Shown here one piece after another: positions 3-64,000 of a DNA stretch of 64,000 bases (position 1 is the first letter of the stretch; every line of letters begins with the position of its first letter). The position numbers and the translations under genes are program-made. The stretch comes from Geosiphon pyriformis uo1 (lineage: Eukaryota; Fungi; Glomeromycota): positions 1,929,538 to 1,993,537 of the forward strand of contig JAAOMT010000128.1 of NCBI GenBank assembly GCA_016748015.1. Reading direction: 5' to 3'. A model generated the notes under the pieces. It was not told the origin of the DNA, ran no database searches, and saw only the letters and a list, made by a program, of their open reading frames with translations.

Positions 3-2894
3 GTATATGAGCGGTATTCGAATGCTTCCGTAACAGGGATCTTACTTGAGGAACTCGAACCTTACATTATAAAAGATAAAATTCGAGATTTACCTCCAGA
101 AATAATGAAAGATCTGGTTTCGCATTATCAAAAACATCGCATGTTGGCACGGGTTGAAGAATGTATATGGCACATTAACCCACTATGTTTGGATATTGAT
201 CAAGTTGTCCAACTATGTTCTAGTGAAGGTCTATATGATGCATATATTTATGTATATAATCGCTCGATGGTGGACTATGTTAGTCCAGCGGTTGAGCTCG
301 TTGTTTTGATCCGGAAAATATTGATCTTGGAAAAACCAAAACGCCGAAAACACCGACTTTCAATGGGAGGTGCAACAGATCATGGCTTACAAGTCGAAGA
401 TATAGAAACCATGAAATCGAACGCTCGAAAATTTTACACATATCTTAAAAACATTCTTACTGGACGTACATATCCAAATGGAGCCCCCCTAAATGAGATC
501 GAAGCGAATGAGGCGCGCACGACACTCTACTCGTTCGTCTTTTCAGGTCGTTGTGTTGTCTGGCCCAGACATGGTGGGGATCTTATCTTGACAGCCGAAG
601 ATGAGAAGCATGGCGCTGAGCCTACATATCCATATCTACGATTGTTCCTGCGATTTGATACTCAGGCGTTTCTCCAATCTTTAGAATCGGCTTTCGAAGA
701 TTCTTACCTCAACGGAGTTGAGATAAATACGAGTAATGATGAATATTACGAAGAGGAAGATGTACCAGGAAAAATAATCAACCGACAATTACTAGTAAAT
801 ATTTTGCTTGAAGTAATGACCTCAAGCTCTGCAGAACATTCCGAATTTACCCCTTCCGACATATCTTATATATACTGTTTCGTGTCTCGAAACCTTCCCA
901 AATATCCCCAATTTCTCCTATTACCACCATCAACCATTCAACATATTTTAATAAAACTCGGTATGGATAATGATCCTCGTACGCGAGAAGAACGCCAGTT
1001 TGCAGTTGAATGCTTGCTCTCAATATACAATCCTGATAACGAAGATCGCATGGTTGCCCTCTACGAGAACGCCGGATTTTGGCGGGTTTTAGAACATGTG
1101 TATAAGGCTGATAAAAAGTATGGATTGCTTGTAACAACCTACCTGAAAGATGCTGATCGAAGAAAAGAAGTATTCCAATGTATCAGAGGGCTATTGGATC
1201 CCAATTGTGGGCTAACGCAAAGTCAACGTGATGAAGTGTCTGCTACTGTCATGTCAATGATTGCTGATATTGTCAATATCGACGGTGAAAAAACGGCGCA
1301 GTTAATCCAAATCTATTTTAATCGTGATCATCAGAATGTAATCGCAAATTTGGAATCTTCTCCAATACTTCTTTTCACGTATCTAAGAGGACTTTTAGAG
1401 CCTCTGCAAGATATTTTAAACGCAGAAGACCCAGATTTTGTCCCGGATGTCGAAGAACAAATCATTTGTGCTGATAAAACCACAGATTTAACATTTATTG
1501 GACCAGAAATCCATGAACAGTACATCGCGCTCATGTGCAAATTCGACCCTACTGGTGTATATCACTACCTTCAAACACACCAAGAAAACACATACAGACT
1601 TGAGAAGGTACTGCTTATATGTGAAGCTGCGGGTATCGTAGACTCTGTTGTTTGGATCTTGGAGCGAAGTGGAAATGCTTTAGGTGCGCTTGATAAAGTA
1701 TTGCAAATCGTTCAAGGAAAAAAGCAAGATATTCTCGATCTCGTAGAAGAAAAAAAAAATACCATGAATGAGAGATGGACATTGCATGAAAAATCTAGAG
1801 TGGATCAATCTTTGATGAAGTTAAAAGGTGTGCTTAAAATAGGCATAATGTTATGTGAGAATAGTTGCCGAAGAGCAACAATGTCAAATAATGGCAGTGA
1901 AATTGCTTCAACTTCTGTTATACCGTTACCTAATCGTACAAATGAAAGTGAAACTGAGATTTTATGGTTCAAACTTCTTGATTCATTTTTGGGCGCCACT
2001 AAATCGATATCATCAAGTTTATCACCACAGTTTCCATCCTTATTGCCCGATAGGCTAATGGCCAACGGACAGGTGTCATCATATGGTATGCCCCGGATAC
2101 CCGTACCTCCTCATATAGCGAATCATCTCATTACCACATTCAAGTCTTATGTACAGTCTATCATGAGGTCATTACTTCTATCAACCTCTTCTTACGTTTC
2201 TTTGCCTCGGCTGCTACTTCGGTTCATTCAATCACAATCCAAGAGGAACAGTACGGTTGCGGATTTCAGGGAAATCTTTGTTGGCATGATTGATACATAT
2301 AAATATGAAGGTCAGTTGCTGGCTATGACCAACCGACTATTTGAAAAGGACTTGTTCAGGGGTGTAGCAGGTGTTGTACGGCAGCGTGGTAAAGGATGGC
2401 GTCCTCGAAGGGGGACGTGTGAAGTGTGTGGGGGTCAGTTCTGGGGAACCGATTTGACTCCCCTGACCCTCCGCACGACACCGGGTTGGGGTTCAGCCGA
2501 AAAGAAAACGCCCCATTCATCCAATATATCAACCAATGCCACTATTGCAGATATTATTCCGAATTTAGAGGCGGCGGCGGCTGCGGACGATGAAATATCA
2601 AGTTCTGAAAGTCTGGTCCCTACCTCATCATCGCAAACGGTCTCTCCTATTGAGCCAGTGTCCAAGGTGACAACGAAGACTACTCAAGAAAATGACCTTA
2701 TTTTATTCCGTTGTGGTCATGGATATCACCGAAGATGCCTTGAGACGGAAAACGCTGATGATGAAATTGAAAATATTTCCTCTGAATCGAAGTGTGCCGT
2801 TTGTCAAACCGAAAGAATGGGTGAAAGTTGGACACCTTCGCAAGAATCTAGAGTTGGTGTATTGTCGAAAAGCAAAGGGAAGGAAAAAAGGTGA
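3..2894 (+). CDS. VPS8: Vacuolar protein sorting Vps8 (CORVET subunit), 5'-partial; alpha-solenoid plus C-terminal RING-H2 split by a low-complexity insert
   Basis: Frame is open from the window start (VYERYSNASVTGILLEELEPYIIKDKIRDLPPEIMKDLV...). Vps8-type motifs: LEPYI..PP, LDIDQV..LC...LYDA..Y, YPYLRLFLRFD..AFL. RING halves: CEVC ... FRCGHGYHRRC ... CAVC. Confidence 0.9.
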   Translation, partial: VYERYSNASVTGILLEELEPYIIKDKIRDLPPEIMKDLVSHYQKHRMLARVEECIWHINPLCLDIDQVVQLCSSEGLYDAYIYVYNRSMVDYVSPAVELVVLIRKILILEKPKRRKHRLSMGGATDHGLQVEDIETMKSNARKFYTYLKNILTGRTYPNGAPLNEIEANEARTTLYSFVFSGRCVVWPRHGGDLILTAEDEKHGAEPTYPYLRLFLRFDTQAFLQSLESAFEDSYLNGVEINTSNDEYYEEEDVPGKIINRQLLVNILLEVMTSSSAEHSEFTPSDISYIYCFVSRNLPKYPQFLLLPPSTIQHILIKLGMDNDPRTREERQFAVECLLSIYNPDNEDRMVALYENAGFWRVLEHVYKADKKYGLLVTTYLKDADRRKEVFQCIRGLLDPNCGLTQSQRDEVSATVMSMIADIVNIDGEKTAQLIQIYFNRDHQNVIANLESSPILLFTYLRGLLEPLQDILNAEDPDFVPDVEEQIICADKTTDLTFIGPEIHEQYIALMCKFDPTGVYHYLQTHQENTYRLEKVLLICEAAGIVDSVVWILERSGNALGALDKVLQIVQGKKQDILDLVEEKKNTMNERWTLHEKSRVDQSLMKLKGVLKIGIMLCENSCRRATMSNNGSEIASTSVIPLPNRTNESETEILWFKLLDSFLGATKSISSSLSPQFPSLLPDRLMANGQVSSYGMPRIPVPPHIANHLITTFKSYVQSIMRSLLLSTSSYVSLPRLLLRFIQSQSKRNSTVADFREIFVGMIDTYKYEGQLLAMTNRLFEKDLFRGVAGVVRQRGKGWRPRRGTCEVCGGQFWGTDLTPLTLRTTPGWGSAEKKTPHSSNISTNATIADIIPNLEAAAAADDEISSSESLVPTSSSQTVSPIEPVSKVTTKTTQENDLILFRCGHGYHRRCLETENADDEIENISSESKCAVCQTERMGESWTPSQESRVGVLSKSKGKEKR

Positions 2895-49026: not shown

Positions 49027-49929
49027 TCAATCATCCAAATTCTTCCACTTCCAAGCGAGTGCCCAGAATTCCAATATATATCTTACCATTGTCAGTAGGT
49101 CGTCATCTTTCACCCAAACTTTCCATTCCAGAGCGGTCAAGAAGTCAATTTCTATTGATCGAAGCTTACCTATGTCGATATCCAGTTGATCTGCGTACAG
49201 TTTCGTGAGATCTTTCATCTCAAAATCAATTTCCGTCTTGTAAGCTATTAGAAATGCGATGGCGAACAATGGAAAAATACTTGAAGCGGAAATAGTTGAG
49301 CCCGTTTTACCGTTATAAGTGAGAGCATATCGTCGAACCAGCACCAAACTTTTTATCGCGGTTCGTATTACGGCCCGTGGATAATCGGAATCGTAGTCTT
49401 GATAGAGTTCTAGCACGGTTAAAAATTCTTGTCTCAAGTGGGGTGAAAAAGTGATCTTGTAAGTATTTTGGCAAAACGCAGTCGTCATCAGAATGCAGAT
49501 GTCGGCCAAATTTTCATAGACATCATTTTCTGATGATGAATTAGAAATTAGGAGATTTTCAAACTTGTCGAGTAATTCGGTATCATCTGTATCATCGGCG
49601 CCCGTCGTCTGTAATGTATAATTTTAATAGTTGATATTGTAAAATAATTTAAAAGACCAAGCATTCTCATCAAGATTGTTAGTTACCTCGGCGATTTCCC
49701 AGTCCATCACCTCTCCATCCAGAAGTAAAGATTCTTGACTCGAACAAGAGGACGAATAGAAGCCATCAAGTTGTTTTGTAGAGTCATAGAATTTGCTTCC
49801 AGAGATAGAGTTTTGTGGAGTATTTACGTTTTTATTATGCGTCCAATATTTTAGGTTCGAATCACAATGTGAAGCTGTAGAGTTAGCTTGCACCGGAGCA
49901 AGCGAGTCTATAGCAGAAGCCACTGCCAT
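49027..49929 (-). CDS. Cyclin-box protein (Pho80/Pcl-like), 2 exons (49929-49687, 49608-49027), 274 aa
   Basis: A phase-0 GT-AG intron (49686-49609) joins the two ORFs. C-terminal FAIAFLIAYK...KLRSIEIDFLTALEWKVWV resembles cyclin helices 3-5 (A.K...L..ME..FL..L.W.L.V). Confidence 0.65.
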
Positions 49930-50530: not shown

Positions 50531-51310
50531 AAATAGATTAAAAGTATTCCAAATCGTAAAATTGAATATTGTCATCATTCTCGAACATTCTAAATCAGGT
50601 ACCCTCATATAGAAATAAAAAATTGGTTTCACTACATTCCCGAGTCGCATTTAATTGTTCATTTATTTTTTTATTGATTTGTGGTAGCACAAAATTCTTA
50701 ATATGAGATAATTGGAAAAATTAAAAGATTGAATAAATGCTTATTACAAATTTTAAATTTCAAAATATCAAAGTATAAAAAATCATACGTAACCTTTAAC
50801 CACCCCCAAAATTTCAAATGGAGTCACTGCTTCAAACCTAATTATAATATCGTGCTTTTGGCTTAAAAACTTAATTAGTTGAATTTATAGGCTGATGTGA
50901 GCATTTATCAAATTGATTATTACCTACTACTATGCCAAATGAGGTAATCATGTTCAAAACGTTGATCTTAAAGCTTTTCCTTAATGGTTTTATCAAATTA
51001 ATTCATAATTGTGGGAAAATGGTCGATCGATGAAATCATCAACTTTCCCGAGACAATATTACTGAACGAATGATAATCATACCATTATTAACAGCTGACT
51101 AGCTTTTTGATTTGTACTAGGTAACTCTAGGAAAAATTTTGTCTAATTGGAGAGAGCCTGACAATAATACTTTGAAAAATTTTCCTATTTAAAACACTAT
51201 CCAAAATTTTTAGTATCAATCACTTTATCACTTGTTCTTAAAATATTTCTCTCTCAAAGTCTAATACTTTTCATTAAATTCAAATTAAATCGTAAATATC
51301 ATTCCATAAA

Positions 51311-51691
51311 ATGCGAATAAAACTTTTAAACGTAAATTTTCCACAGACAGTTGATGGTCGAGTGTATCATGTTGGTGTCAAACCTGGTGAAGGTAAATTT
51401 TGTTTAACTTTGGCATTTTTTAATTAAAAATTCTTGATTATTTGATCTAATTTTGAATAGTGGCGAACCGTATAATAACTGTGGGTGATCCAGCTCGTGC
51501 GAAACTTTTGGCAAAATCATTAGACAATGATACCCCGTTATTCACTTACGAATCACAACGTGGTTTCTTGACCATAACCGGTCGGTATCGTGGAACGCCA
51601 ATTAGCATAATAGCTATTGGTATGGTAAGATTAATTTTTATTTATCTTCTGATTGGGATATCTTTCTTTCTTTCTTTCTTTTCTTTTTTTT

Positions 51692-51735
<44 letters not shown>

Positions 51736-52614
51736 TTCCCTTTCTTTTTTAATATTTTGAATGTAATTCTATTCAAAGGGGTTGGGAATGATGGACTTTT
51801 TCGTACGAGAAGTTCGTGCTGTAGTTGATGGTCCATTAGCAATAATTCGGTATGGCTCTTGTGGTTCCTTTGGTTCTTCCGCAGGCAATATCGTCATACC
51901 ACATGGTAATTTTGCAATTACGCGAAATTATGATTATTTCGCAGATGATAATGAGGACACCAATTCGAAACCGTATAATATATCAAAGGTTTTCAATGGG
52001 GATCCAGAAATTTATGCTTTGGTATGTGGCTCACTTTTGATATTTTCAATTTTTGGCCACCAATTAATAAAATTCTTATTTTCTCAATTCTCTTACTAAC
52101 AAAGCTAAAAGATGAATTCTCAAATTTTCTCGATTCTAAAACTGAAATTTTGACCGGACTAAATTCAACCAGTGACAGTTTCTACTCATCCCAAGGTCGT
52201 CAAGACATCAATTTTCGTGACGACAACCAAAACCTGATAGAGTACATTTCATCGGTATATCCAGAAACTCAATCCCTCGAAATGGAAACCTTCGCCCTTT
52301 ACCACCTCGCCAAGACTTCTACCAGCTCCCCAATAAAAGATTCCACAATTTCACAATCAAAGTTAAGCCCGGTGAGCACAAGTATTAAAGCTGGTGCGGC
52401 GTTGATGATTTTTATAGATAGAAAGAATGAGAAATTTATTTCACCAGAAAGGATAAATTTCTTGGAAAATGTGGCTGGAAAAGCGATACTAAATGCCTTG
52501 GTGAGGGTGAAATTGGATCAAGTTCATGACGCGGTGGGTAGTGTTTGGGAACAGAAAGTGACAGAAATTGATAGTGGTATAAGTGATGAAGGGGAGAATT
52601 CAAGTTTCATTTGA
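51311..52614 (+). CDS. Uridine/purine nucleoside phosphorylase family protein (PNP_UDP_1), 4 exons (51311-51392, 51461-51624, 51779-52021, 52105-52614), 332 aa
   Basis: GT-AG introns give a 999-nt frame, with a TACTAAC branch point in intron 3. Motifs GRVYHVGVKPGEVANRIITVGDPARA, IGMG..MDFFVRE, IRYGSCG, SDSFYSSQGR, EMETF. Confidence 0.9.
51660..51732. repeat. (TTTC)n microsatellite in intron 2 of the phosphorylase gene
   Basis: Direct inspection. Confidence 0.9.
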
Positions 52615-53002: not shown

Positions 53003-56000
53003 TCAGAAATCTTTTATGCTATATAACTCTGCGAAAAGGCTCATTGTAAGCTGTTCGACCTTTGATTTGAATGTCAATTTTTACACAATTTAGAAAATGA
53101 AGGTATTCGAACAGTGAATGAGAGAAAAAAAGAATGAAAGAATTATTTTACCGCGGTTACTGTATTCGAATTTTTAACAGGAATTTCTTCCTCGTTGCCA
53201 ATGAGTATAAAAAATCTTTTAGTGAATATATAATCGCCAACTGAAATTTTCAGTAAAGTCCAAAAAAGGCTTGTTGCTTCATCAGAAATATTTCGCTAAA
53301 AATGTTCATTGTGTAAAATTAATTAAAAATTTCAAAGAGTCAAACTGAAAAAAAAATTCGATTGTAAACTTGCATCAAAGATTTCTTTCTGATCCAAAAT
53401 TGTGACAGATTGACTAAAAGCCGCAGAGCGAATGTGGATTAAAGCGTAATGTGCTCTGTAAATAAAAGTAACCATTTTTCGTAAGATTTTCATTGTTAAA
53501 TTCAAACAAAGTTTGTCTGCTTAGAATAACTGTCAAAATTTTGTTTTACTTTTCTATTTCAGCGGGATCCGTTGACCCCTCCAAACACTCAATTATGTCT
53601 GGGTGTAGAATGACAAACCAATCATCATTGGTACATTTGGAGCGTCGCTTGTTTAGAATTTGGAAAGCAAAGTAATGTTTAATTCACGAAAGATAATCAC
53701 AAGAAAATCGGAAAAAGTTCGAGATTTTTTACACTATTTAAAATGCCAAAAACTCTTTGGAGGGTGTCATTATAGGTTAAAAAAACTCGTCTGCTTATGG
53801 CAATAATTCCTCCTAGTAAATAAGTGTAGAAATATGAAATTCAACCTTCTTATTCAATTAAGGGATGATTAACTAGGTTTTACCTGAGGGAAATATTGTG
53901 AGACATCTTGTTGAACTCGATAGAGAAGATTCCCATCGAATGACTTGAAATTCGCAGCTTGACTGATGCTTAAGTTGATCCAAAAAGGGCATTTGGAATA
54001 GACTCTTGAGGTTGGGGCAATCAATCTAAGTAATCAAAAATTTAGACATTTGAACCTAGAACATTGCTTCAAATAATCGATTTTTAAGCCTACCAACACA
54101 AACTGAATGTCAATTGTTTTTTTCATTGAATAAACAAATCTTGCCCCAAGAGATCTTAATACGAAAATAAGATTGGCTATTTCAGGATTTTGTAGATTAC
54201 CAAAAATCCAAAATCTTGGCCCTTTGAAACGAGGGGTCCTCAGGCTAGGTGATAATTCAACATTGAGAGGCGCGATGATAATACGATGTTTAGTTTTATC
54301 TCCGAAATTAAATATTTTACGTGCTTCCTGACCGAGAGGAAACATGAATAAATGTAATGATGGCATAAAATTTAGCCTTAGGGAGCCAACCTTTGGAGAA
54401 AGTGAAAAAGATTAATTTGAAAACAATATATATAATATGAAAGAAAGTTTTACCAAAGAATTGATTGAAATTTTTTACGAGTTTATTTTCTAAATAGTCG
54501 AAAAATAGATCGTCCAAGTTATTTAGGCCTTGAAAATCGTTTCTATCTGTCTGAATGCTAAAGACCGCCAAGTGAGCAGCGGAATCCCCGATAAACCGTT
54601 TTGCTTGATGAAATTCGATAGGCTTCGCTAGCCACAGTATAGTTTCTTTCTGAAATATCTTTCTAAAATGTTTATTATCGAAAATAAATGAAAGGTTTCG
54701 AAGGATTGAAACATATAAAAATTTTCCTTACAAATATGGAATTCCCTCTGACCCACAAATTCGTTTGATGGCCACGTTAGCAAATAAACGTCTTGTTTGC
54801 CGGTCGACGATTACTCCCTCCCAATCCCTGCGAGTTATTCCTCATAAAATTTGAAGTTTGAAAATGAAAATAAATTGGCAAAAATATTTACATAGTATTG
54901 CTTTTTATCCACCACCGTTCTGTAAAAGAATTAAAAATTTACGTTACTTGAATAAAAAAATTCCGAATCTCTATTTAATTCCAGAGGAAGAAATGCTTAC
55001 CAATATTTTGGCAATTTCTCTTATTATTTGTATTCGGGTCCTTACGTTCCTCATTATTTTCCTCTGAAGCCGTATCATTCTTGTCAAAAAATATTTAAAA
55101 AATTAATGAAAGCTTTTCCCTTGGTTGGCCGAATGAAAGCCTCATCATCACTCAAAAATATTTGCATTTGAGAAAGTGTAGATCTATAATTACTTCCTGT
55201 GAAATGAAAATCTTTTTAGCCAAAGAGGTTGGTTTTTCACTTCCATGTTTCTTCTCTTTTTCATTATTTGAATCTTTTTTACTCTTGATTTGATTTTTGG
55301 TTTGTAAAAAATTTTGACGAGAGATTGGTCTGCTATTTTCTGAAACATTATTGACTTTAGGTGAGGACAATGGGATTGAGGAAGAGGCATCATTTTTTTG
55401 GACTAATCTTTCTCCAGTTTTTAATGGGGAATAGCCGCTTGTTTCTGATAATTCTCCTTGGCTAGGTGCCAAGTTTTTGTTAAACTGTATAGACACAAAA
55501 TTAAAATATTTTCCTTCAAATTTTTTTAAACTTGAATATTGTAGATCGAGAAAGGGGTTACTTGATCTTTAGCCAAATCGTCTTCCCTTTGCTTTCCCTT
55601 CTGTTTGCGCCTATAACTTTGCATTAAATGTTCATAATTCCTCAAATTTTTTAGATTGACCCATTGTGATTGATTTGATGAATCTAAGAAACATTAAAAC
55701 TCTAGTTAAATAACCAATTTTTGGTTCATTAATCATTCTAAAATGGTCTCACCATTAAATAAAACTCTGACAAAATTCTCCCCCTCAATATCTCTCATCT
55801 CTATAATTTCTTTTACCAATTTTATACTGTCTCTTCTTTTGGATAATCTCCTGGATTTTATGCCTCCGGGTCGAATGATAGTTCCTGGTTTTCTGATTCT
55901 TCAAGTTCGCCATGAGAGCAATAAATAATTACAATCAAGAATTTAAGAGAAATCAATTATTATTATTATTATATATAAATTAAAATTCTTACTTCGTAGG

Positions 56001-56048
56001 AACTTTACCACCCATACTCTTACGCGCAAAGCCAGTACGAGGGTTCAT
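53003..56048 (-). CDS. Chp1/TASOR-like protein: H3-tail mimic, chromodomain, SPOC, PIN-like C-terminus; 15 exons, about 628 aa
   Basis: Exons 56048-55993, 55892(or 55898)-55753, 55683-55562, 55484-55194, 55079-55001, 54919-54892, 54827-54732, 54662-54479, 54390-54094, 54025-53884, 53812-53733, 53647-53550, 53455-53374, 53295-53161, 53059-53003 splice to 1887 nt with all phases consistent (13 GT-AG introns, one GC-AG). Chromodomain: VKEIIEMRDIEGENFVRVLFND...QWVNLKNLRNYEHLMQSY. SPOC-like: DWEGVIV...FFDYLENKLVGSL...LFMFP. TASOR/Chp1-like: MPFLDQLKH...IFPSGGIIAIS...WFVILHP...KRFFILI. Confidence 0.75.
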
Positions 56049-57350
56049 TATTAAGGAGATCCTTCTCAGAAGAGCAAAGGATGGTAAAAATTAGTTTTTA
56101 GTAGAAATAAAGTCTCTAAATATTTGAGAATATGAATGAATTCATTTCGAATCCCGGTGATGCCAAATCATTATTATTTGTTTAGAGCTGATAAATGAGA
56201 ATGAATTTTAATATATACTGCAACAAAACCAGACAAAATGAACATTTTATTTTTGCTTGTAGCTTTTTAATGATTCAAGATCCGGAATATAAGATAAGAA
56301 AATCCAAGGGCATAAATTAGGTAATTGCTAGGTTCTTGTCATCCCTCCTTTTTCTATCTTTGATATTTTTCTTTGTAGCATCCTTTTGGACATATTGATT
56401 AACATTTTTTTATCTTCTTGGCAACTCTTCATATTTCTATGACATTAGTCCAACCAACCTGGCCCTTTGTAGATTATTTTCTCAGCGGGAATAGGGTCCA
56501 AGTTTAATCGAAATTCACTAATTTCCTCTTGCTCAGGACCCAAACAGTTAACTTCTGATTTCTTTCATTCATTTTGCCTCAAGGGAGATGAAGCGAAAAA
56601 ATTTCTAACATCGATTTGATTATTAATTTTTTGAATACACAGTTATAATAGTTCACCCATTTCGGTTCAAGTTTGTTCATCAACAGGATTAATAACCAAG
56701 TCATCTTTCAATGATGACAAGGTTTAGTTTTTTTCAGACACGATTCCATTTTTAGCTTACAATTTTTCTATACTTTCTTGCTATTCTTGCGGGGTGAGTT
56801 TTAATTATTTTCTTCTACCTGGTCAGGCCCTTTTGCATAATCTTTTTCATAAATAGGAACGATGTGCAAGTGAAAGTGCAAAATTGATTGATAACGTCAA
56901 TCTTCTGACCCATTATAACAATAGACAAGAAAGCCTTGTGGAGTAAAAAGTTTGTTGATTCTCTCTAACATATTTCTTAAAAGAGACATCATATTATTTC
57001 ATTCTTCCTTTACTTAGCCCTTTGATTGTGTTTACCTACAGTCACTATATCTTTCTTGTTTCGAAGCAGTATATCAACCAGAATCATGAAAAATTTTATT
57101 TTCTTTGAGCATTTTTTATTAACACAAGTTTCCAAAATGAAAAGAGGTATTTATTGCCTTTGGTGTTTAGTAATAATTTTGAAATTAGGAATTTTTTAGG
57201 ACTTGAAAATGCTAAGATTAAAAGGAATCAAAATAACTTTTTTCAAATGCAATACTTTTTTAACTATTCAAATGTATAATTATTTTTTTCAAATATAATT
57301 AACGTAATACAATTGAAAATGTGATTGATTAAAAAAAAATCTTTAAAGAA

Positions 57351-61979: not shown

Positions 61980-64000
61980 TTTTTTTTTTTTTTATTAAGC
62001 ATTTAACAAGTGTAGCCCAACCACTACCTAAACTATAACAATATACAAAATCCTATATTAAGTATGATTCATGCACTTTCTATATATGACAGCCACTTGA
62101 GCCAATCAAGGCAACACTAGACATCTAGACCACTAATTACTAAGAAGTTACTTAAAAAACTGAAGTGTGCACTGAGTAGACAAGAATGTAAACCATAACA
62201 TATGTGAATACCTAACCTGATACCAAAATCAAAGATCACACTGGGAGACCACAAGAAAGCCGGACCAGATACCACCAATATTATGAATTCATTATATAAC
62301 AAAAGACCATGTTTCTTATAAAGCACTCTCAATTTGGTAGTTGGCAGCCACATGGTGAATCTATGACCCTCAGCAAAGCTTCAGACTAAACCAATTACTA
62401 GAAACTTATTATTAGAGCCACCATCCAGCAGACAGACCATATTATTTATCCAATTCTTCAAAACAAAGCCCTTGGCTAAGGACATATATAAATAATCCAA
62501 CAACTCAGCCTCTTATAGAAATCAAATCACCATACTATCAGCAGCAAGAACACCAAGCAACTTAATCCAACAATCAATAGTTTTTGAAATCAACTCATTT
62601 TTAGCACCAGCATTATGAATGCAAGAGAACATGTGATTAGAATTCTCAAACAACCCACACTGGATACATAGCATGCTCAGATAATCTGAATCATAAAGCC
62701 TCTTCCTCTTGGCTACAAGAAGGCAATTGTGCATGACTTTCATGAAATAGAATTGAAGACACACAGAAGAGTAGCTGGTAAAGCCTGATTGAAACTGACT
62801 ATTAGGATGTCATACACTAAATATATATTGCATATTAATTTCATTGTGTAGTGTACTTTCTACAGCATAAACCACACATTTGGCTTCCCAACCAACAAAG
62901 CTTACAGCATCAAAAAGACACTTGACAAAATAGTAAGCATTTTCAGAAACAGGTTTTTCTTTAATAAACAAAAACCAGCAGGACATTTCAACAAATAACA
63001 CAATGTCAGAACCAGTGGCAACATTGGCCAATAAATCAATATACTCATTGTTATAAACCCAGAGTGGCCCTTAACTTTGTTCCAAGCTACTAACAAGTTC
63101 TTTAATGCAATGATCTGCTGGATTTATTCCCTTTCAATCCAATATTTATCACAAAAATTGAGACCAGTAAAATTTTTATAAAAAATACAAGCATCCAAAA
63201 ATGCCTAACTGTCTATAAAAAGAGTAACCAAACTGAAAACAAAAATGCACTTTAAAGCAAAGGTGATAGCATATAGTTCAGTCAGGGTTGACGAAAGCAA
63301 ATCATTCATTCCAATTCCCATACCATCATCAATATTAGGAAAATAAGCAGCAGTACCACTGTAAGCACCTATAGAACCCAAATTTTTAACTGAGCCATTA
63401 GTATAAACCACCACACTATCTGAAGTATTCTCAAAAAATATTTACTGATAGAACTTAGATTAATTCAGGAACTATCAAGAGCTGGATCAGAAGCTAAGAC
63501 ACAACCATCAACTAAACCACCATTCCCAATAAATATCATTAACACACTAAACTAACCAGGAACCAGACCTTTCAAATTCAGTCTTTTCCATCTACAAAAA
63601 TTACTTCACATAAAACACATGCTGTAACAGTCCAAAAGCTGGTTTGTAAAAATAATGCCAAACTTCTTTAGCAAATTAACCACACTTATATACTGATCCA
63701 AACCCAAAATGTCAGCAACAGATATGCCACTACCAGTCCAGAAAACATTCAGCAAAACATTGCCCAAGAAGAACTTGCATGACACCAAAATGTTGGTTAT
63801 ACCAGCTAAAAATGAGTTTACAGAATCCAATAACAACACAACCAGAAAACTAATAGGTTGTTGAAACATTCAATTGACTGCCTGCAGATCCATCATCCTG
63901 TGTTTAAAAAATCTGCCAAGAACGTCTTTTGAATTGGCAAACAGTACCAAATTAGCCAAAAAGTTTTTGGCTTGCAATTGCCTAAAAGTCTTGAGGTTAT
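61980..64000 (-). mobile_element. LINE copy 5, 3' part (RNase H, CCHC, 3'UTR, poly(A)); same subfamily as copy 4; continues beyond the window
   Basis: Poly(T) at 61980-61993. Minus-strand ORFs closely match copy 4 (WLPTTKLRVLYKKH vs WLPTAKLKVLYKKH; VVYTNGSVKNLG vs VVYTNDLVKSLG). Confidence 0.95.
62009..62118 (-). other. LINE 3'UTR structured RNA element (copy 5)
   Basis: The minus strand reads agtgttgccttgattggctcaagtggctgtca...ttaggtagtggttgggctacact, with the same stems as copy 4. Confidence 0.7.

Follow-up and report, generated by a model that had tools for sequence, protein, structure and literature searches.

We analysed a 64,000-nucleotide window of contig JAAOMT010000128.1 from Geosiphon pyriformis, a fungus that lives in soil and is a relative of the mycorrhizal fungi. 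The gene of interest lies on the minus strand of this window, running from an ATG at 56048 to a TGA that ends at 53003, and comprises 15 exons (1896 nt) encoding 631 amino acids (aa). The predicted protein starts with a histone H3-tail mimic and a chromodomain, followed by a disordered linker and a likely SPOC domain; DomII and a PIN domain without activity probably complete it. For the first 100 residues the anatomy is shown, the SPOC domain is likely, and for the remainder we infer a resemblance to Chp1 and TASOR. The first-pass annotation of the window, made from the sequence alone, had placed it in a probably early-diverging fungus, which agrees with the position of Geosiphon pyriformis in Glomeromycotina.

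Gene structure and public annotation

Splice sites were picked independently from a three-frame reading of the minus strand, and the resulting chain of 15 exons stays in phase, with the terminal codon as its only stop. The first-pass annotation had given the same exon number and about 628 aa, a length obtained when an alternative last acceptor at 53051 drops three residues, and all the motifs it quoted are present in the spliced model in the order given. Phase by itself is weak evidence for a gene model, because in-phase chains are easily built in AT-rich DNA. The G+C content of every exon exceeds that of every intron (exon minimum 0.326 versus intron maximum 0.298; p 2.5e-6). A codon-position model, for which other long frames of the same genome served as training set, scored the chosen frame best in 12 of the 15 exons, but not in exons 10 and 15 or in micro-exon 6. 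The introns are 64-114 nt long, including 13 with GT-AG and one with GC-AG borders. By base composition and reading frame, the gene is real; a genome search found it to be single-copy, with no paralogue. According to a small splice-site matrix, trained on the junctions common to our model and the public one, introns 1 and 6 have weak acceptors. These two sites are the least certain parts of the model, along with exon 15, micro-exon 6, and the choice of frame in exon 10.

The gene had been described as cryptic, which it is not, because GenBank already annotates it as a hypothetical protein of 567 aa (KAG9304513.1; G9A89_020077). The public model has the start and most exons in common with ours, omits exons 6, 11, and 15, and takes a different frame through exon 10, so that the splicing departs in the 3' half. 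Our sites outscored the public ones for three donors (introns 3, 7, and 13) and for one acceptor, that of intron 9 (5.7 versus -7.9). The public donor of intron 9 is a non-consensus GTTTGT, while intron 13 (53373-53296, minus strand) is the GC-AG intron, for which the public model instead places the donor at a GT that is weaker and lies 33 bases earlier.

No homologue of the protein was recovered. HMMER with exon 9 over 1.84 billion protein representatives returned only KAG9304513.1, as did word-based searches that used the full-length protein or its separate regions and were limited to proteins of 312-992 aa; metagenome scans were blank. Previous surveys reported Chp1 and Tas3 as confined to Schizosaccharomyces pombe or absent from Mucorales (PMC9963178; PMC12863538), and our literature search turned up no description of a Chp1-like protein from outside Schizosaccharomyces.

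One explanation of such an orphan is that the models have joined two genes or a decaying gene, namely a short gene for the mimic and the chromodomain and a separate gene downstream. The exon joins come from genomic sequence, two acceptors are weak, and there is no homologue to compare with, all of which would fit such a fusion. However, the introns are uniformly short, the chain contains neither an intergenic gap nor a stop, and the independent public annotation connects the same ends, which makes this explanation very improbable.

The histone H3 mimic and the chromodomain

Exon 1 (55993..56048), which is identical in the public model, has a G+C content of 0.48 and ends in a strong GTAAGA donor. 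It encodes the segment ARKSMGGKVPTK (55993..56027, minus strand; its last Lys is divided by intron 1), in which nine of 12 residues are identical to residues 7-18 of histone H3 of the same organism, and the register counted from the first Met matches exactly. Thus K10, S11, K15, and K19 of the protein correspond to K9, S10, K14, and K18 of H3. No shuffled sequence reached the score of this segment, either among 5000 shuffles of the whole protein or among 20000 shuffles of its basic first 45 residues, and none of about 227,000 other six-frame windows exceeded six of 12 identities to the H3 segment. When the intron-free DNA pattern for ARK[ST]xGGK was searched in 128 Mb, it matched three times, in two H3 genes and in the gene studied here; the reversed control matched once. 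The protein carries an H3K9-type ARKS motif beyond chance.

At the DNA level, the identity to H3 is only 22/35, so the mimic is, as judged from sequence, either an old capture or a convergence. Its register from the Met favours capture of the 5' end of an H3 gene. Exon 1 as a fragment of an H3 pseudogene was considered and rejected, since no histone fold follows it, the DNA identity is low, the Ser codon family differs from that of one H3 gene, and the strong donor is in phase with exon 2.

H3K9 mimics have been described in G9a, SETDB1, ATF7IP, DNMT3A, and the ARK loop of Swi6; they have in common with the present one an A-x-K-S core that can be methylated and read by chromodomains. The described mimics span 4-6 residues, while that of Geosiphon pyriformis spans 12, extends through the equivalents of K14 and K18, and keeps the distance from Met found in H3. 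The GFARKS of the mimic differs by one residue from GFALKS of SETDB1, which in methylated form is a chromodomain ligand bound by Cbx7 at 5 uM (PMC3013012).

The chromodomain (55586..55831, minus strand; residues 42-100 of KAG9304513.1) spans intron 2. Exon 2 (55753..55892) contributes a basic stretch and strands 1-2, and its weak acceptor has an in-frame alternative AAG at 55899; exon 3 (55562..55683) contributes strand 3 and the helix. An alternative start at 55913 was rejected, being in another frame and losing two chromodomain strands. A single-sequence AlphaFold2 model of residues 42-100 (mean predicted local distance difference test score, pLDDT, 84.8) shows three strands and a helix. Foldseek with this model returned only chromo or chromoshadow domains among the top 50 matches (probability 1.00; template modelling score by query 0.62-0.84; best E 0.007), and a structure-atlas search likewise matched chromodomain proteins. 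The best VIA-align match was to Oxpecker (Z 8.9, root-mean-square deviation 2.1, 59 aligned), followed by Rhino (8.3), HP1 (8.2), and Chp1 (3g7l, 7.7). This fold check has upheld the chromodomain of the first-pass annotation, which we consider shown by the predicted model, though the fold is silent on the chromodomain family; the match to human MPP8 is as good as those to HP1 and CBX. Pfam gave only PWWP over this region (E 0.016; exons and KAG9304513.1), and hhalign detected no signal between KAG9304513.1 and the chromodomains encoded elsewhere in the genome, so the call rests on the fold.

In the alignment, the cage positions of the domain are K45, F66, and S69, where most other chromodomains of the genome have Y or F, W, and Y, respectively. 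Only the middle aromatic (F66) of a three-aromatic cage like that of Chp1 is kept, and since two of the three are lost, the chromodomain is probably not a reader of methylated H3K9 (H3K9me), unlike that of Chp1. Group II chromodomains of chromoviruses also retain the second cage aromatic alone; previous study showed that chromodomains of this kind do not bind H3K9me, yet can reach heterochromatin (PMC2832683). In contrast to these elements, the gene studied here is intron-rich, single-copy, and cellular, and encodes no integrase; a retrotransposon integrase chromodomain was rejected for the first two reasons.

The loss of the cage would favour an unmethylated ligand, which raises the possibility of a protein with Chp1-type architecture whose mimic works in cis. 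While unmethylated, the tail would fold back into the cage-less chromodomain of its own or a second copy of the protein, forming a switch for auto-inhibition or oligomerisation that is released by methylation or by phosphorylation of S11. The spacing of about 25 residues between mimic and chromodomain would suit such a fold, and the shorter ARK loop of Swi6 serves auto-inhibition in this way (PMC9128075). However, the mimic keeps the equivalents of K14 and K18, beyond the needs of a chromodomain groove, which suggests reading by enzymes, and we regard the cis switch as unlikely.

Between the chromodomain and the SPOC region lies a 142-aa linker rich in S, N, K, and E, as the earlier claim of a low-complexity linker had it. 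Exon 4 (55194..55484) and exon 5 (55001..55079) encode linker sequence. Next comes the uncertain 28-nt micro-exon 6 (54892..54919), which has a strong acceptor and a poor frame score and is missing from the public model. Pfam found no RRM in this interval, where Chp1 has one. According to ESM features, residues 1-430 are nearest to chromodomain proteins of 1059-1380 aa from Ascomycota and Basidiomycota (0.83-0.84), which may belong with the present protein in one wider family or may simply be other chromodomain proteins.

The SPOC region and the C-terminal part

The probable SPOC domain starts with a WEG strand in exon 7 (54732..54827), continues through exon 8 (54479..54662), which ends in the helix LFFDYLENK, and reaches about 54262 in exon 9 (54094..54390). 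Its motif register (W.G, LF.Y..K..G, and a hydrophobic strand with a final P) resembles that of the PHF3/DIDO/Bye1 proteins. Unlike these, the present protein has neither a PHD nor a TFIIS domain, and the identity is only about 20%. By ESM features, residues 243-567 matched SPOC clusters (PF07744) at 0.80 and 0.78 and an unnamed 714-aa basidiomycete cluster at 0.81, all below the 0.9 bar, and nine of ten family matches agreed on SPOC. End-to-end alignment to the genome's true SPOC domain gave Z 2.5-3.6 against shuffles over five boundary choices, with p values that are somewhat generous because the boundaries were chosen by the analyst. Only 3/484 real decoy windows attained this score, and the score along the protein peaks at residue 241. 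The SPOC domain claimed at first pass has thus gained modest support from the features and the global alignment, with the Pfam SPOC profile silent; as read from sequence, it is supported, not proven. A chromodomain followed by SPOC is very likely.

Candidate DomII begins at about 54222 in exon 9 and ends in exon 10 (53884..54025), which also encodes IFPS and has two open frames with indecisive frame scores, the public model using the other one. Exon 11 (53733..53812), favoured by frame score and acceptor and missing from the public model, would encode the first PIN strand (GIIAIS); both the DomII start and this strand are placed by motif likeness only. Candidate PIN continues through exon 12 (53550..53647, WFVILHP), exon 13 (53374..53455, followed by the GC-AG intron), and exon 14 (53152..53295, KRFFILI). 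Exon 15 (53003..53059) holds the stop and is uncertain, as the public model ends in intron 14. In this order, the C-terminal segments look like what we take to be the DomII-PIN part of TASOR and Chp1, and they serve as a lead only.

The DomII/PIN resemblance put forward at first pass is not shown: it comes from motif likeness and was confirmed by no tool. When exons 9-14 and KAG9304513.1 were scanned, Pfam gave nothing relevant and PDB only chance matches, with queries that were either single exons (26-48 aa, hence weak) or the public protein, which lacks exons 11 and 15, has exon 10 in its other frame, and so misses the first half of candidate PIN. A six-frame genome search with the TASOR families PF23314 (alpha-beta) and PF24630 (PIN) gave no candidate at the locus, a weak test since the former region is spread across 2 exons and the latter across 6. 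The sole PIN_TASOR candidate elsewhere in the genome was rejected as AT-rich non-coding DNA. We still consider the DomII/PIN step likely, and on it hinges whether the protein is Chp1/TASOR-like or another kind of chromo-SPOC protein.

In the latter case, the gene would encode a chromo-SPOC transcription factor, whose SPOC domain reads the phosphorylated tail of RNA polymerase II or co-repressors, as in PHF3, Bye1, or SPEN, and whose last 240 aa form another fold. The lack of any tool support for DomII or PIN speaks for it, together with the Bye1/PHF3 type of the only SPOC domain that was aligned to it and the confinement of Chp1 to S. pombe in surveys. However, a canonical SPOC protein of this type is already present elsewhere in the genome. 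In addition, the C-terminal motifs appear to follow the TASOR/Chp1 order, and the H3K9 mimic suggests heterochromatin. A chromo-SPOC transcription factor therefore seems unlikely.

According to previous studies, Chp1 and TASOR resemble each other (PMC7532188; PMC7619638), and Chp1 contains chromo, SPOC, DomII, and PIN domains (PMC7532188). Chp1 is a core subunit of RITS (the complex for RNA-induced transcriptional silencing), with an RRM in addition and a length of 960 aa. The present protein resembles it in the N-terminal chromodomain fold, the long linker, and the identical order of probable SPOC and candidate DomII-PIN. It differs in being about 330 aa shorter, in lacking the RRM and two cage aromatics, and in having the N-terminal mimic, no detectable sequence similarity, and no Tas3-like partner found. 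With human TASOR it shares the probable SPOC and, further on, candidate DomII/PIN; it lacks the pseudo-PARP domain DUF3715, its N-terminus consisting of mimic and chromodomain without a Pfam match, and it lacks DomI, so that candidate DomII directly follows SPOC. Unlike in the human silencing hub (HUSH), the chromodomain stands in the same chain. The protein is thus not classifiable as Chp1, for want of the cage and the RRM, nor as TASOR, for want of the pseudo-PARP domain. By analogy, it is probably a scaffold that works like them.

Genomic surroundings and possible function

The neighbours of the gene are housekeeping genes. On the same strand, a probable HIT-family gene with short exons and an HFHLHIVP motif (56300-57200, minus strand) ends about 270 bases upstream of the ATG; Pfam was blank on a 31-aa piece of it. 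Downstream, a convergent gene of the PNP/UDP phosphorylase family (51296-52611, plus strand) ends about 390 bases away, stop to stop, followed by a Pho80/Pcl-type cyclin gene (49027-49929, minus strand; PF08613, E 0.01, one exon). The window begins with the C-terminal part of Vps8 (105-2894, plus strand). Several decayed copies resembling long interspersed nuclear elements (LINEs) occur at 15400-48000 and 62000-64000, with weak RRM and RNase H matches and spacers of 8-19% G+C.

The genome encodes Clr4/SUV39, two HP1-like genes, Chd1, two Eaf3 genes, and further chromodomain proteins, as well as two Stc1 domains and many Argonautes. The Eaf3/MRG15 genes are paralogues (L019 and L020; G000:C726 and C778). 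Two uncharacterised chromodomain proteins (L014 and L018; G000:C575 and C596) have intact cages and long linkers, and L014 may have an HDA1-complex-like domain, judged by a motif. Two Argonaute genes (G000:C666:346536-347453 and C555:21378-22268) are single 889-aa open frames, possibly retrocopies, and the other Argonautes are intron-split.

The gene product was proposed at first pass as a candidate LINE-silencing scaffold. As a true RITS subunit, it would bind H3K9me, a Tas3-like adaptor, and Argonaute, and would silence LINEs, for which the genome offers Argonautes, Stc1, Clr4, and HP1, and the window offers decayed retroelements over 15-48 kb. However, the cage is degenerate, and the search for a Tas3-like partner with PF22378, the family of the N domain by which such proteins bind Chp1, gave no match in the genome, although fast-evolving or split genes would escape it. 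RNA interference and H3K9me are independent of each other in Mucorales (PMC9963178). The tie to LINEs is one of neighbourhood only, and since repeat-rich surroundings are ordinary in the Geosiphon pyriformis genome (PMC11952901), nearness to retroelements says nothing about targets. The LINE-silencing claim is therefore not supported as it was made, and there is little chance that the protein is a RITS subunit.

The reading we prefer, held tentatively and at somewhat less than an even chance, is a fast-evolving nuclear scaffold of the Chp1 type that does not read H3K9me and is instead tethered to heterochromatin by its mimic in methylated form. The protein bears a copy of H3 K9-K18 and a chromodomain that retains only the middle cage aromatic. 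The cage-poor chromodomain would not bind H3K9me and might bind something else, such as nucleic acid, a nucleosome surface, or the unmethylated tail. Clr4/SUV39 would methylate K10 of the mimic, and the chromodomains of HP1 or Clr4 would bind the methylated K10, so that the protein would be docked on heterochromatin; S11 might serve as a phospho-switch, and K15 would stand for K14 of H3. The SPOC/DomII/PIN end would then recruit a partner or RNA-handling factors to repeat transcripts, as Chp1 and TASOR do. Given the rest, a role of the mimic as a methylated docking site is the somewhat better bet.

Several points weigh against this scaffold. In the absence of homologues, the mimic, the cage, and the motifs are known from one sequence; the exon junctions are predicted from genomic DNA, and a weak acceptor, that of intron 1, connects the mimic exon with the chromodomain. 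The ESM scores are leads only, local BLASTP to the genome's true SPOC gave E 0.65 (with the right helix and strands aligned), the predicted model of the SPOC region has a pLDDT of 33, and a genome-wide profile search found one canonical SPOC domain elsewhere and none at the locus. To these are added the blank scans for DomII, PIN, and the Tas3-like N domain.

A broader proposal, which we offer as a doubtful possibility, is that an old and unrecognised fungal family with chromo, SPOC, DomII, and PIN domains reaches Glomeromycotina, and that this member captured the 5' end of an H3 gene, so that being read replaces reading H3K9me and the methylated tail of the protein itself would dock it on heterochromatin. 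An evolutionary link between RITS and HUSH, suggested by the first-pass annotation, was already proposed in 2020 (PMC7532188); the idea stands as a prior one, and a member from Glomeromycotina alone would not bridge to animals. The likeness of TASOR and Chp1 implies a much older common ancestor (PMC7532188). If DomII and PIN are true, the architecture predates the split of Dikarya and Glomeromycotina, and a protein of the Chp1 type in Glomeromycotina would partly close the gap, suggesting that surveys missed the family through divergence. The protein would then be a candidate for the coupling of transcription to H3K9 methylation in repeat-rich mycorrhizal genomes. Whether or not PIN is confirmed, a 12-residue H3 mimic next to a cage-less chromodomain provides a hypothesis that is directly testable at the peptide level.

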